Of a DNA stretch of 47,140 nucleotides, positions 45,001-47,140 are shown one piece after another. The position numbers were made by a program, and so were the translations under genes. Origin of the DNA: Klebsormidium nitens (taxonomy: Eukaryota; Plantae; Klebsormidiophyceae); assembly GCA_000708835.1 (NCBI GenBank), contig DF237600.1, positions 1 through 47,140 of the forward strand, given 5' to 3'. Within the stretch, counting starts at the first letter, position 1. Each line of letters starts with the position of its first letter. The notes under the pieces were generated by a model. The model was given only the letters and a program-made list of their open reading frames with translations, was not told the origin of the DNA and did no database searches.

Positions 45001-46106
45001 CTTGCTCGTCATCATCGTCCTCTTCCTCACTCCTGGCAGGAAAGGGAGGAGCCAAGGGCTATAATGACACAACGAATCAGCAATGACTTTTGGTACAAAT
45101 CTCAAATGAGATACATAATAGCAATGGAATTGCCGAGTTTGATCTCGAAAGCCACGCATCCCATCTTCCTGGCACTGATAGTCTTGTCAACTCTCGTTGA
45201 CAAGACAAAGTGAAAGCCATCATGTCAGTGTCACCTCGGACCAAACAAACCACCCTAAGAACTGACAACATATCCAACCTGGGTGCTCCTACAGAACCAG
45301 CCAATTGCCAATTGATGGACCGGTGGGTGACCTGGCCACATGTCTTCCTTGGATCCTTCACAATTCACCACCATCACGTCAGGTGACCTAGCCTCATCAA
45401 GAGGGTATCCAGCCAAGAGGGTGTCCAGCCAACACTGACAGACAGCCACAGTGGTCCTGAAGTTGATCAAAAGCGCTTTGATCCTTCCGGCCACGTTAAA
45501 TAGCTCGGCACCGGCTCACCTGCTCCCATAATCCCCGGGGCTAACCGCCCTCTCCTTCCTTCTAGGCTCCCCATCCTCATGAGCCCCCCCATTTGGCAAC
45601 CGCCGCCTCCAGCTCCCCCCATCTGCAATGTCCACAGCATGTGACGAAGCCCCACCATCTCCCCCCCTCTGTCTTATCAGGCCATTGGCATGTTGAGGGC
45701 TGTGCCGCCCGTTGCTGTCAACCTCTGCTGCGTCCAGACTGCTCCTGCTCCCATCCCCCCTGCTCTGCTGCTTGCGCAGGTTGTAACAGAAGTTGCAGAC
45801 CCGCGTCTGGGACCCGCTCTCTCCGTCTGACTTGTAGTAGCTGGCCGCCTCGTCCCCAGATGGGCCCGGCCCAGCCACCGGCAGAGTGTGCTTGGTGCAC
45901 TTTGAACAAAAGCCGCGCCCACACAGGCCGCAGTACTGCCGCCTGTTGAACAACGTGAACAGGGCCTGGCACTCGTAGCAGCTCCCCTGGTCTGCCGCCC
46001 AGTGATGGTTGCCCGCGTCCGTCTCCTTCTTGGAGCCCGGCAGCCACGCGCGCCACCCCGCAAGCGCATCATTCAAATTGCTGCCGCTCTTGCTCCGCTC
46101 CTCCAT
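36072..46106 (-). CDS. FAB1: 1-phosphatidylinositol-3-phosphate 5-kinase FAB1 (FYVE, CCT-like, conserved Cys-rich region, PIPK domain), about 2289 aa
   Basis: Exons 46106-45520, 45032-44403, 44053-43291, 42962-42741, 42355-41291, 41009-40524, 40257-38045, 37762-37516, 37211-36945, 36461-36072; frame-consistent. Motifs: FYVE cysteines and RVCNFC, GVVCRKNVAHRRM..RNPRLLLLGGALEYQR, HRQGSLTISV/IWMWHRC, GGKSNVFF, YDLKGS, MDYSLL, GIIDFFRQYTWDK. Confidence 0.95.
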
Positions 46107-47024
46107 GCTGCCGCTGCTGACTGCCTACATGTCAGGCCAACGGGTCACACAGCTTACTAGGTCACAGGCACCAGAATCAACCAGGAAACCTGATCCCAAG
46201 CAAGACTTGCTCTGCTGCGCCCAGTATCATTTTGCACCCTCTTGTTGGCGTCATCCAAAGCAGCCTCTCTGCACAGCTACAATTCTGCAAGGTACTTCCC
46301 AATTGAGTCGCCATATGTGGACAATGGACCAAATCAAGGTATGCTTTGTCAAATTAGGTCAACAATAAACCTACAGAATGCCCCACAGAGTCTGCACCCG
46401 TCCCATTGTGCAGGCTCCCTTCCCCAAAGAGAGTGTGACGCCCTTTGCTGCAAAAGTCTGCACCCATATTGGGGAGACTACTTTCAAGCAGCTCCGATTT
46501 GTCCTCGTGCTGTAGCCTATCTCCAGGCGCCTTATCGACTCGACTATGGAAAAAGCATGCAAACGGACGCTTTTCACCGCAGTTGTCCAGGATACTTCAA
46601 ACCTGGGGATGTACACCTCAGCTCCATCTGTTTCAGTGTTTGTGCGCTGAAGCCCACTTGGGAAGAGACGCACTTTCAAATTCCATCCGGTTCTTGCAGG
46701 GGGCCTTTCATCAGTGATGAGTCATCATGGGCGCCACCTATGCAGCTCTTCTATGCAGTGCGCCACCTTCCGAGATGCTGCTGCAGCAGGCGGTCCAGGC
46801 CTCGGATCACAATTCACGGTTTCAACTTTCACCGTTTCACGGTTCACCTTGTCTACACTGATGCAAAGTTGAAACCCGCAAACCAAGCATCACCGTCCGG
46901 TCGCCACGCTGGGGGCGACCGACCAGCTAGCGCTGCGGCTTTGGATATCGCCGAGCATGGCACGGTACTGGTGCACAGTACATAGACGGTACATGTTTTT
47001 GTGTACATGTAGTAGTTATAGCTC

Positions 47025-47140
47025 GAGGGGGAGGGGATACGAGCGATATCCAGCTCCCGAGGCGAGATATCCCCCGAGGGCGGGAGCCCGAGGGGGATAG
47101 ACGCCGAGGAGCTGGATGTCGCTCGTATCCCCGACCCCGA
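47025..47140 (+). other. Long rod-like hairpin with tandem GA/GA internal loops and a GGGA tetraloop, truncated by the window end
   Basis: Stems 47027-30/47135-38, 47033-57/47108-32 (25 bp, one G-T), 47061-64/47102-05, 47068-75/47092-99, 47078-81/47086-89; loop 47082-85. Confidence 0.85.

Follow-up and report, generated by a model that had tools for sequence, protein, structure and literature searches.

The upkeep of hairpins that fold on one strand is well documented in bacterial and viral single-stranded DNA systems and in structured RNAs, not in dispersed nuclear foldbacks. Strand-specific folding with kept mismatches is the recognition mode of HUH enzymes and of single-strand origins. In rolling-circle single-strand origins and in HUH hairpins (IS200/IS605 ends, REP/RAYT, Helitron, Replitron 3' ends) the imperfections of the stem are kept as recognition marks, and function rests on the one strand that folds. 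A related behavior is found in centromeric satellites such as the Drosophila dodeca-satellite and (TGGAA)n, in which only the purine-rich strand folds back, via tandem sheared G·A pairs. Strong stacking of tandem sheared GA-AG is a property of RNA as well as of DNA. For DNA, tandem GA-AG is the classic example of a sheared mismatch with strong stacking (PMC8163305). Among viral hairpins, the left end of the parvovirus MVM is GC-rich, about 120 nt long and contains a small GA bubble that makes its two arms non-equivalent; a GA doublet opposite a GAA triplet acts there as a functional spacer (PMC1185569). Two further groups come close in architecture. Foldback and MITE elements, for example of the Mutator type, are short, non-coding, intergenic and promoter-distal and consist almost entirely of inverted repeat, and plant and algal miRNA or hairpin-RNA precursors combine very low folding energy with a long, near-perfect helix between internal loops.

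We describe here an imperfect palindrome at positions 47021-47140 of a 47,140-nt stretch of the Klebsormidium nitens genome (contig DF237600.1, referred to as the window), which resembles each of these systems and coincides with none. It shares with foldback and MITE elements the general build, the location, the repeated short sites in the arms, the lack of a detectable counterpart in relatives and a sequence that breaks off inside the element. However, the known foldbacks have arms that are mirror images with random differences and carry no one-strand GA/GA steps, and the palindrome described here is known without its right end. The likeness to rolling-circle and HUH hairpins lies in the kept imperfections and the single folding strand, whereas no Rep gene is seen here and the rod lies in nuclear intergenic DNA. 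The MVM left end has one bubble compared to five here, is the end of the genome of an animal virus and carries NS1 sites, while no viral gene is seen here. Centromeric satellites are long tandem arrays, in contrast to the solitary, non-periodic palindrome of K. nitens. Finally, miRNA and hairpin-RNA precursors are similar in size and folding energy, but the hairpin has neither a family match nor conservation. To our knowledge, precursors of this kind have not been described with a regular series of tandem G·A pairs.

Fold geometry and strand asymmetry of the palindrome

Sequence reading and folding of the + strand agree on a single rod of 45 bp, composed of 32 G-C pairs, 12 A-T pairs and one wobble, T47047·G47118. 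The rod is interrupted by five GA/GA loops, two one-base bulges and the wobble, and it is capped by an apical GGGA; 30 bases are unpaired, 26 of them purines. The window ends at 47140, within the right arm, hence the foldback comprises at least 116 letters and the 45 bp are only its visible part. Read from the open end inward, GCTC (47021-24) is unpaired, its partner position lying past the window end. It is followed by the fifth GA/GA loop, at the open end (47025-26/47139-40), then by 4 bp and a GA/GA loop at 47031-32/47133-34. The longest unbroken helix, 25 bp formed by 47033-47057 with 47108-47132, includes the T·G wobble and has GA/GA loops at both ends. Further inward are a 3x2 loop with CGA (47058-60, bulged C47058) opposite GA (47106-07), 4 bp, a second 3x2 loop with AGA (47065-67, bulged A47065) opposite GA (47100-01), 8 bp, and the innermost GA/GA loop (47076-77/47090-91), which leads over 4 bp into the GGGA loop at 47082-85. 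The left arm (47021-47081) carries both bulges, T47047 and one GA of every loop, those of the 3x2 loops being 47059-60 and 47066-67; the right arm (47086-47140) carries the five partner GA and G47118. A sequence-only reading of this DNA had listed the five loops, the two bulges, the G-T pair and the GGGA loop, and all coordinates were reproduced. CGAG opposite CGAG is the context of only three of the five loops; GGAG faces CGAC at 47031/47133, and (A)GAT faces AGAC at 47066/47100. What is invariant across the loops is the GA/GA step (G·A·A·G) and not a CCGAGG word, and we rejected this word as a direct-repeat unit because it is absent from two of the five loops. A kink-turn was also rejected, since it needs a three-nt bulge with tandem G·A, A·G (a 5x2 loop) and the loops here are 2x2 or 3x2. 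By eye, the sequence has no four G-runs with short loops, and a canonical G-quadruplex was rejected as well.

The structure is far from what chance would produce. Folded with RNA parameters, the + strand reaches a minimum free energy of -100.4 kcal/mol (z = -12.2), a value that no dinucleotide shuffle out of 200 attains, and the minimum free energy structure accounts for 72% of the ensemble. A foldback scan found it to be the sole strong foldback within the 47-kb window. As a control for the loops, we collected 2x2 loops closed by 4+4 Watson-Crick pairs from the window and about 60 kb of fetched loci (about 110 kb in total). GA/GA occurred in 9 of about 455 such loops, two of the nine belonging to this hairpin, which gives a background of 1.5-2%. 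At this background the chance of finding GA/GA in five of five loops is of the order of 1e-9, and the loops are therefore not the result of palindrome decay. The scattered single mismatches expected from a decaying palindrome are absent from the rod, all ten mismatched bases being those of the five GA/GA. The claim of the sequence-only reading that the mismatches do not look like random decay is thus borne out by the control loops. A purely mutational origin was considered and set aside: each loop needs two specific adjacent transversions from the mirror-image state, and such a route, passing through a single-mismatch intermediate, is unlikely.

All asymmetric features, seven of seven (five GA/GA loops, apex and wobble), favor the + strand. 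On the - strand GA/GA becomes TC/TC, the T·G wobble becomes A·C and the apex GCGGGAGC becomes GCTCCCGC. On the + strand the apex (47080-47087) forms a GNRA-type GGGA loop with a C-G closing pair and at the same time fits GCGNNAGC, the pattern of exceptionally stable DNA mini-hairpins (PMC13037366). The energy gap between the strands is modest. The - strand still folds strongly (-90.0 kcal/mol, z = -9.8, RNA parameters), and the asymmetry amounts to only about 10% of the RNA folding energy (-100.4 vs -90.0 kcal/mol). Folds with DNA parameters give -52.1 (+) vs -49.1 (-), from a nearest-neighbor set that may lack a tandem-GA term and may underestimate the true asymmetry in DNA. Hence the proposal that the structure is tolerated on the + strand only holds for the direction of every feature, but not in the strict sense, given the stable - strand fold. 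Likewise, the wobble, which had been counted as a sign of strand bias, does favor the + strand, but one transition yields G·T on either strand with equal odds, so that it adds almost nothing to the case. Full Watson-Crick pairing would stabilize the rod more than GA/GA does, and this suggests that a shape or recognition mark has been kept, not stability. The + strand looks built for folding alone.

The FAB1 upstream region and its orthologous loci

FAB1 is encoded on the - strand, the ATG of its exon-1 open reading frame (ORF) being located at 46106, and the hairpin begins 915 nt upstream of it, in agreement with the distance of about 0.9 kb noted before. The 9 kb adjoining the hairpin are FAB1. 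The exons were searched singly: exon 1 contains the FYVE domain, and domain matches of the downstream exons to Cpn60_TCP1 and PIP5K are seen in the orthologous loci. A Pfam scan of the ten largest ORFs in the window (196-376 aa) gave no transposase, Rep or helicase domain; the domains found were PGDH (phosphoglycerate dehydrogenase), PPR and FYVE only. The other ORFs tested are ordinary nuclear genes, coding for a phosphoglycerate dehydrogenase and for a PPR protein. If the gene order of L004, the nearest relative at hand, applies here, a + strand ORF cluster without Pfam match and then KIN17 would follow beyond the window, which suggests that the hairpin probably has divergently transcribed genes on its two sides. 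A search with KIN17 found only a further relative, on short contigs, and the best named matches of this neighbor gene are from streptophyte algae and bryophytes.

For comparison we used the orthologous FAB1 loci of a Logan assembly (L001/L004), of a pair of JGI metagenome contigs (L002/L003) and of a pair of short Logan contigs (L009/L010). An exact look-up of the exon-1 ORF gave no match, and the best protein matches of FAB1 exons have 85%, 82% and 61-64% identity. Neither L001/L004 nor L002/L003 has a comparable hairpin upstream of FAB1. None was found in L009/L010 either, but these contigs reach only 547 nt upstream, less than the 915 nt that separate hairpin and ATG in K. nitens, and therefore add little. 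The sole block of the FAB1 upstream region that aligns with the closest relative, at about 70% identity, is 46326-46573, about 220-470 nt before the ATG, and this conserved block is probably the 5' UTR or core promoter. More than about 470 nt upstream of the ATG the intergenic region gave no interspecies alignment and hence no clean empty site. Since nothing can be aligned beyond this point, the absence of the hairpin in relatives is weak evidence in itself. As far as sequence comparison goes, the hairpin is not a conserved element of the FAB1 promoter.

Some neighboring features of these upstream regions were also recorded. A short run of direct repeats of the type TTCAC(G/C)GTTTCA is located at 46812-46850. 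The left flank of the hairpin (46962-47010) contains four GTAC cores together with the short direct repeats ACGGTAC and GTACATGT, two copies each; the density of four cores in 45 nt compares to a background of 2.9 per kb. This cluster could represent SBP-type transcription-factor sites or subterminal repeats of the element. The left flank is no more similar to the hairpin than shuffled controls are. In the distant relative, L002:2159-2412 (the same in L003) is an AT-rich element of 254 nt that is bounded by perfect terminal inverted repeats of 23 bp and lies about 950 nt upstream of FAB1. It is MITE-like and comparable in position, and its sequence is unrelated. Two independent Logan assemblies of a third relative break identically, 547 nt before the FAB1 ATG (L009:1 and L010:1), and the shared break point suggests a repeat or a structure that is hard to assemble.

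Origin of a palindrome with one-strand G·A steps

Our leading reading, which we hold tentatively, is that the palindrome is a MITE-like foldback element specific to its lineage, with a G-rich (+) strand that folds either in single-stranded DNA or in a transcript. It would be one copy of a small family of non-coding, GC-rich foldbacks confined to the Klebsormidium nitens lineage, and would have entered the intergenic DNA 0.9 kb upstream of FAB1 as a palindromic insertion that is, or once was, mobile. The + strand would be shaped for solo folding, its helices broken only by tandem G·A and capped by the GCGNNAGC/GNRA apex. Tandem G·A would be used as the one double mismatch that stacks well, the other strand being left with the poorly tolerated TC/TC. 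Single strands may become available as DNA, during replication or mobilization, or through transcription; in either case the G·A steps would be marks for recognition or spacing. We infer family membership and mobility, as well as the importance of the single-stranded form. Several observations argue for this reading. A young insertion fits the lack of a hairpin upstream of FAB1 in relatives better than a conserved regulatory RNA does. The palindrome is the sole strong foldback in 47 kb, and its location in promoter-distal intergenic DNA is typical of MITE insertions. That the available sequence ends within the hairpin is what one would expect of an assembly failing at a repeat or strong palindrome. 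In its visible part, a 45-bp rod over 120 nt, the element is mostly terminal inverted repeat, as foldbacks and MITEs are. A search for further copies had been proposed, and within the 47-kb window it returned no second one. Transposon origin alone leaves the GA/GA unexplained, since the arms of an ordinary element with terminal inverted repeats are exact mirrors, and a one-strand process is needed in addition.

It is possible, though we consider it less probable, that the palindrome is a hairpin-RNA gene on the + strand, either a young miRNA-like or siRNA precursor, perhaps foldback-born, or another structured non-coding RNA, with tandem G·A and the GNRA loop as marks for processing or protein recognition. 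A stem-loop of suitable size with -100.4 kcal/mol for 120 nt and a dominant structure in the ensemble is what such a gene would provide, as is a 25-bp unbroken helix between internal loops. RNA typically makes use of GNRA loops and tandem sheared G·A, and nothing further would be required on the DNA side. However, stable DNA hairpins show these features just as typically, and the hairpin lacks conservation in the FAB1 upstream regions of relatives. The Rfam comparison that the sequence-only reading had suggested for a structured RNA did not identify one: the window sequence gave 0 matches at the gathering threshold. At a permissive threshold the only similarities, all weak, were to miRNA-precursor models, which speaks for an RNA of this kind, but their scores are 22-31 bits compared to gathering thresholds of 60-85. 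The best of them, mir-185, reaches 30.7 bits vs 60 and matches both strands. Low scores and a match on both strands indicate generic hairpin likeness.

An array of protein sites in double-stranded DNA, with the hairpin and the GA/GA as by-products that never act in single-stranded form, is improbable in our view. A repeat scan found one 7-mer four times in alternating orientation between 47033 and 47132, as GGGGATA at 47033 and 47093 and as TATCCCC at 47068 and 47126, and these copies are possible candidates for protein half-sites, to judge from their arrangement, separated by spacers of fixed polarity. GATATCC occurs twice and CCCGAGG three times within the arms. The 7-mer pairs derive from a short internal duplication in each arm, and the two arms, compared directly, are only mildly more similar than shuffled controls. 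A site array, with two 7-mer copies per orientation, would account for these repeats, but it leaves unexplained why exact GA recurs on the same strand, including the two loops without CGAG flanks, and why the apex matches the pattern of hyper-stable loops.

We attach similarly little probability to a signal for rolling-circle or HUH enzymes acting on single-stranded DNA, perhaps the hairpin at the end or origin of a Helitron-, Replitron- or IS200-like transposon or of an integrated single-stranded DNA replicon. It would be read on one strand only, comparable to the single-strand origin of a plasmid or to a parvoviral terminal hairpin with its GA bubble. The functional GA/GAA spacer of the MVM left end has a likeness in the two 3x2 GA loops of the rod, and the strand bias of a rolling-circle origin is present. 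However, an adjoining Rep gene is absent from the ten ORFs scanned, the proposed transposase or HUH gene nearby did not appear among them, and the adjoining 9 kb are FAB1. A terminal hairpin of the Helitron or Replitron type, as had been suggested, is also disfavored by size, the rod of 45 to >50 bp being several times longer than the known eukaryotic hairpins of about 11-20 bp (PMC10288648), and the roughly 40 nt that follow the hairpin on the - strand contain no CTRR terminus.

The apical part of the hairpin does recur elsewhere. An exact scan with the apical 22-mer gave no match in viral contigs and matched two metagenome contigs and three GTDB genomes, all in prokaryote-type contexts; Rfam returned no family for these bacterial loci at either threshold. 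At three of them (L008:2545-2575, L011:1755-1785 and L012:7697-7727) the match is part of one small hairpin located directly after the stop codon of a gene, CCC-GA-GGGC-GGGA-GCCC-GA-GGG, with near-identical flanks. L008 is from a metagenome and the other two are Acidobacteriota (Thermoanaerobaculia) MAGs. Its sequence and position suggest that this hairpin is conserved as a terminator-like element containing tandem G·A pairs. In a Thermanaeromonas MAG (L013) the match lies inside a structured region without Rfam family. The remaining match, a 3-kb metagenome contig (L007), encodes a 398-aa ORF identified as a Rep_1 rolling-circle replication protein, distantly related to Reps from 2-3 kb plasmids; relatives of this Rep were not found in viral contigs. 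On L007:1197-2986 a GC-rich region of about 600 nt comes after the Rep_1 gene, and CGAG and CTCG occur on one strand of it in a ratio of 17:1. This region folds with three C[GA]G/C[GA]G loops, one C[CGA]G/C[GA]G loop and one C[GGA]G/C[GGA]G loop, and it shares the apical module of the K. nitens hairpin, with 22 nt exact by the scan and 24 nt when the two sequences are read side by side. It has the look expected of a single-strand origin and probably serves a small rolling-circle replicon as its strand-specific origin. By analogy, L007 would illustrate folding of one DNA strand with a C[GA]G/C[GA]G vocabulary beside a HUH enzyme, and to this extent it speaks for an HUH signal in K. nitens. However, the 22-mer is a generic stable hairpin that is present in unrelated bacteria, which makes the likeness to L007 one of analogy, not homology, and we read the matches as convergent use of a stable mini-hairpin and not as homologues.

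It is very improbable that the palindrome is an inverted duplication in neutral decay or an artefact of assembly or sequencing at the contig end: the position at the very end of the window and the known trouble of assemblies with strong palindromes would fit, but adaptor or chimeric-read foldbacks and fresh duplications give perfectly mirrored arms with random errors, whereas ten of ten mismatched bases here are in GA/GA.

Possible one-strand hairpins in a nuclear genome

In the literature on Klebsormidium repeats, tandem G·A hairpins and Replitrons we found no dispersed nuclear foldbacks that are interrupted solely by one-strand tandem G·A. We consider it unlikely, though worth stating, that the palindrome belongs to a previously undescribed class of strand-specific hairpin elements, in which tandem sheared G·A pairs are the sole interruptions and which are read as single-stranded DNA or RNA by a dedicated protein. 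Should the hairpin be solitary or an ordinary foldback, it would be a curiosity of one promoter region. If such a class exists, it would be a eukaryotic counterpart of bacterial REP/RAYT hairpins, attC sites and single-strand origins, or a new family of structured RNAs, and it would point to a partner that reads tandem G·A steps, be it a nuclease, a transposase or an RNA-binding protein. Related foldbacks that keep GA/GA while differing in their stems would show directly, at the sequence level, that one-strand hairpins are maintained in a eukaryotic nuclear genome.
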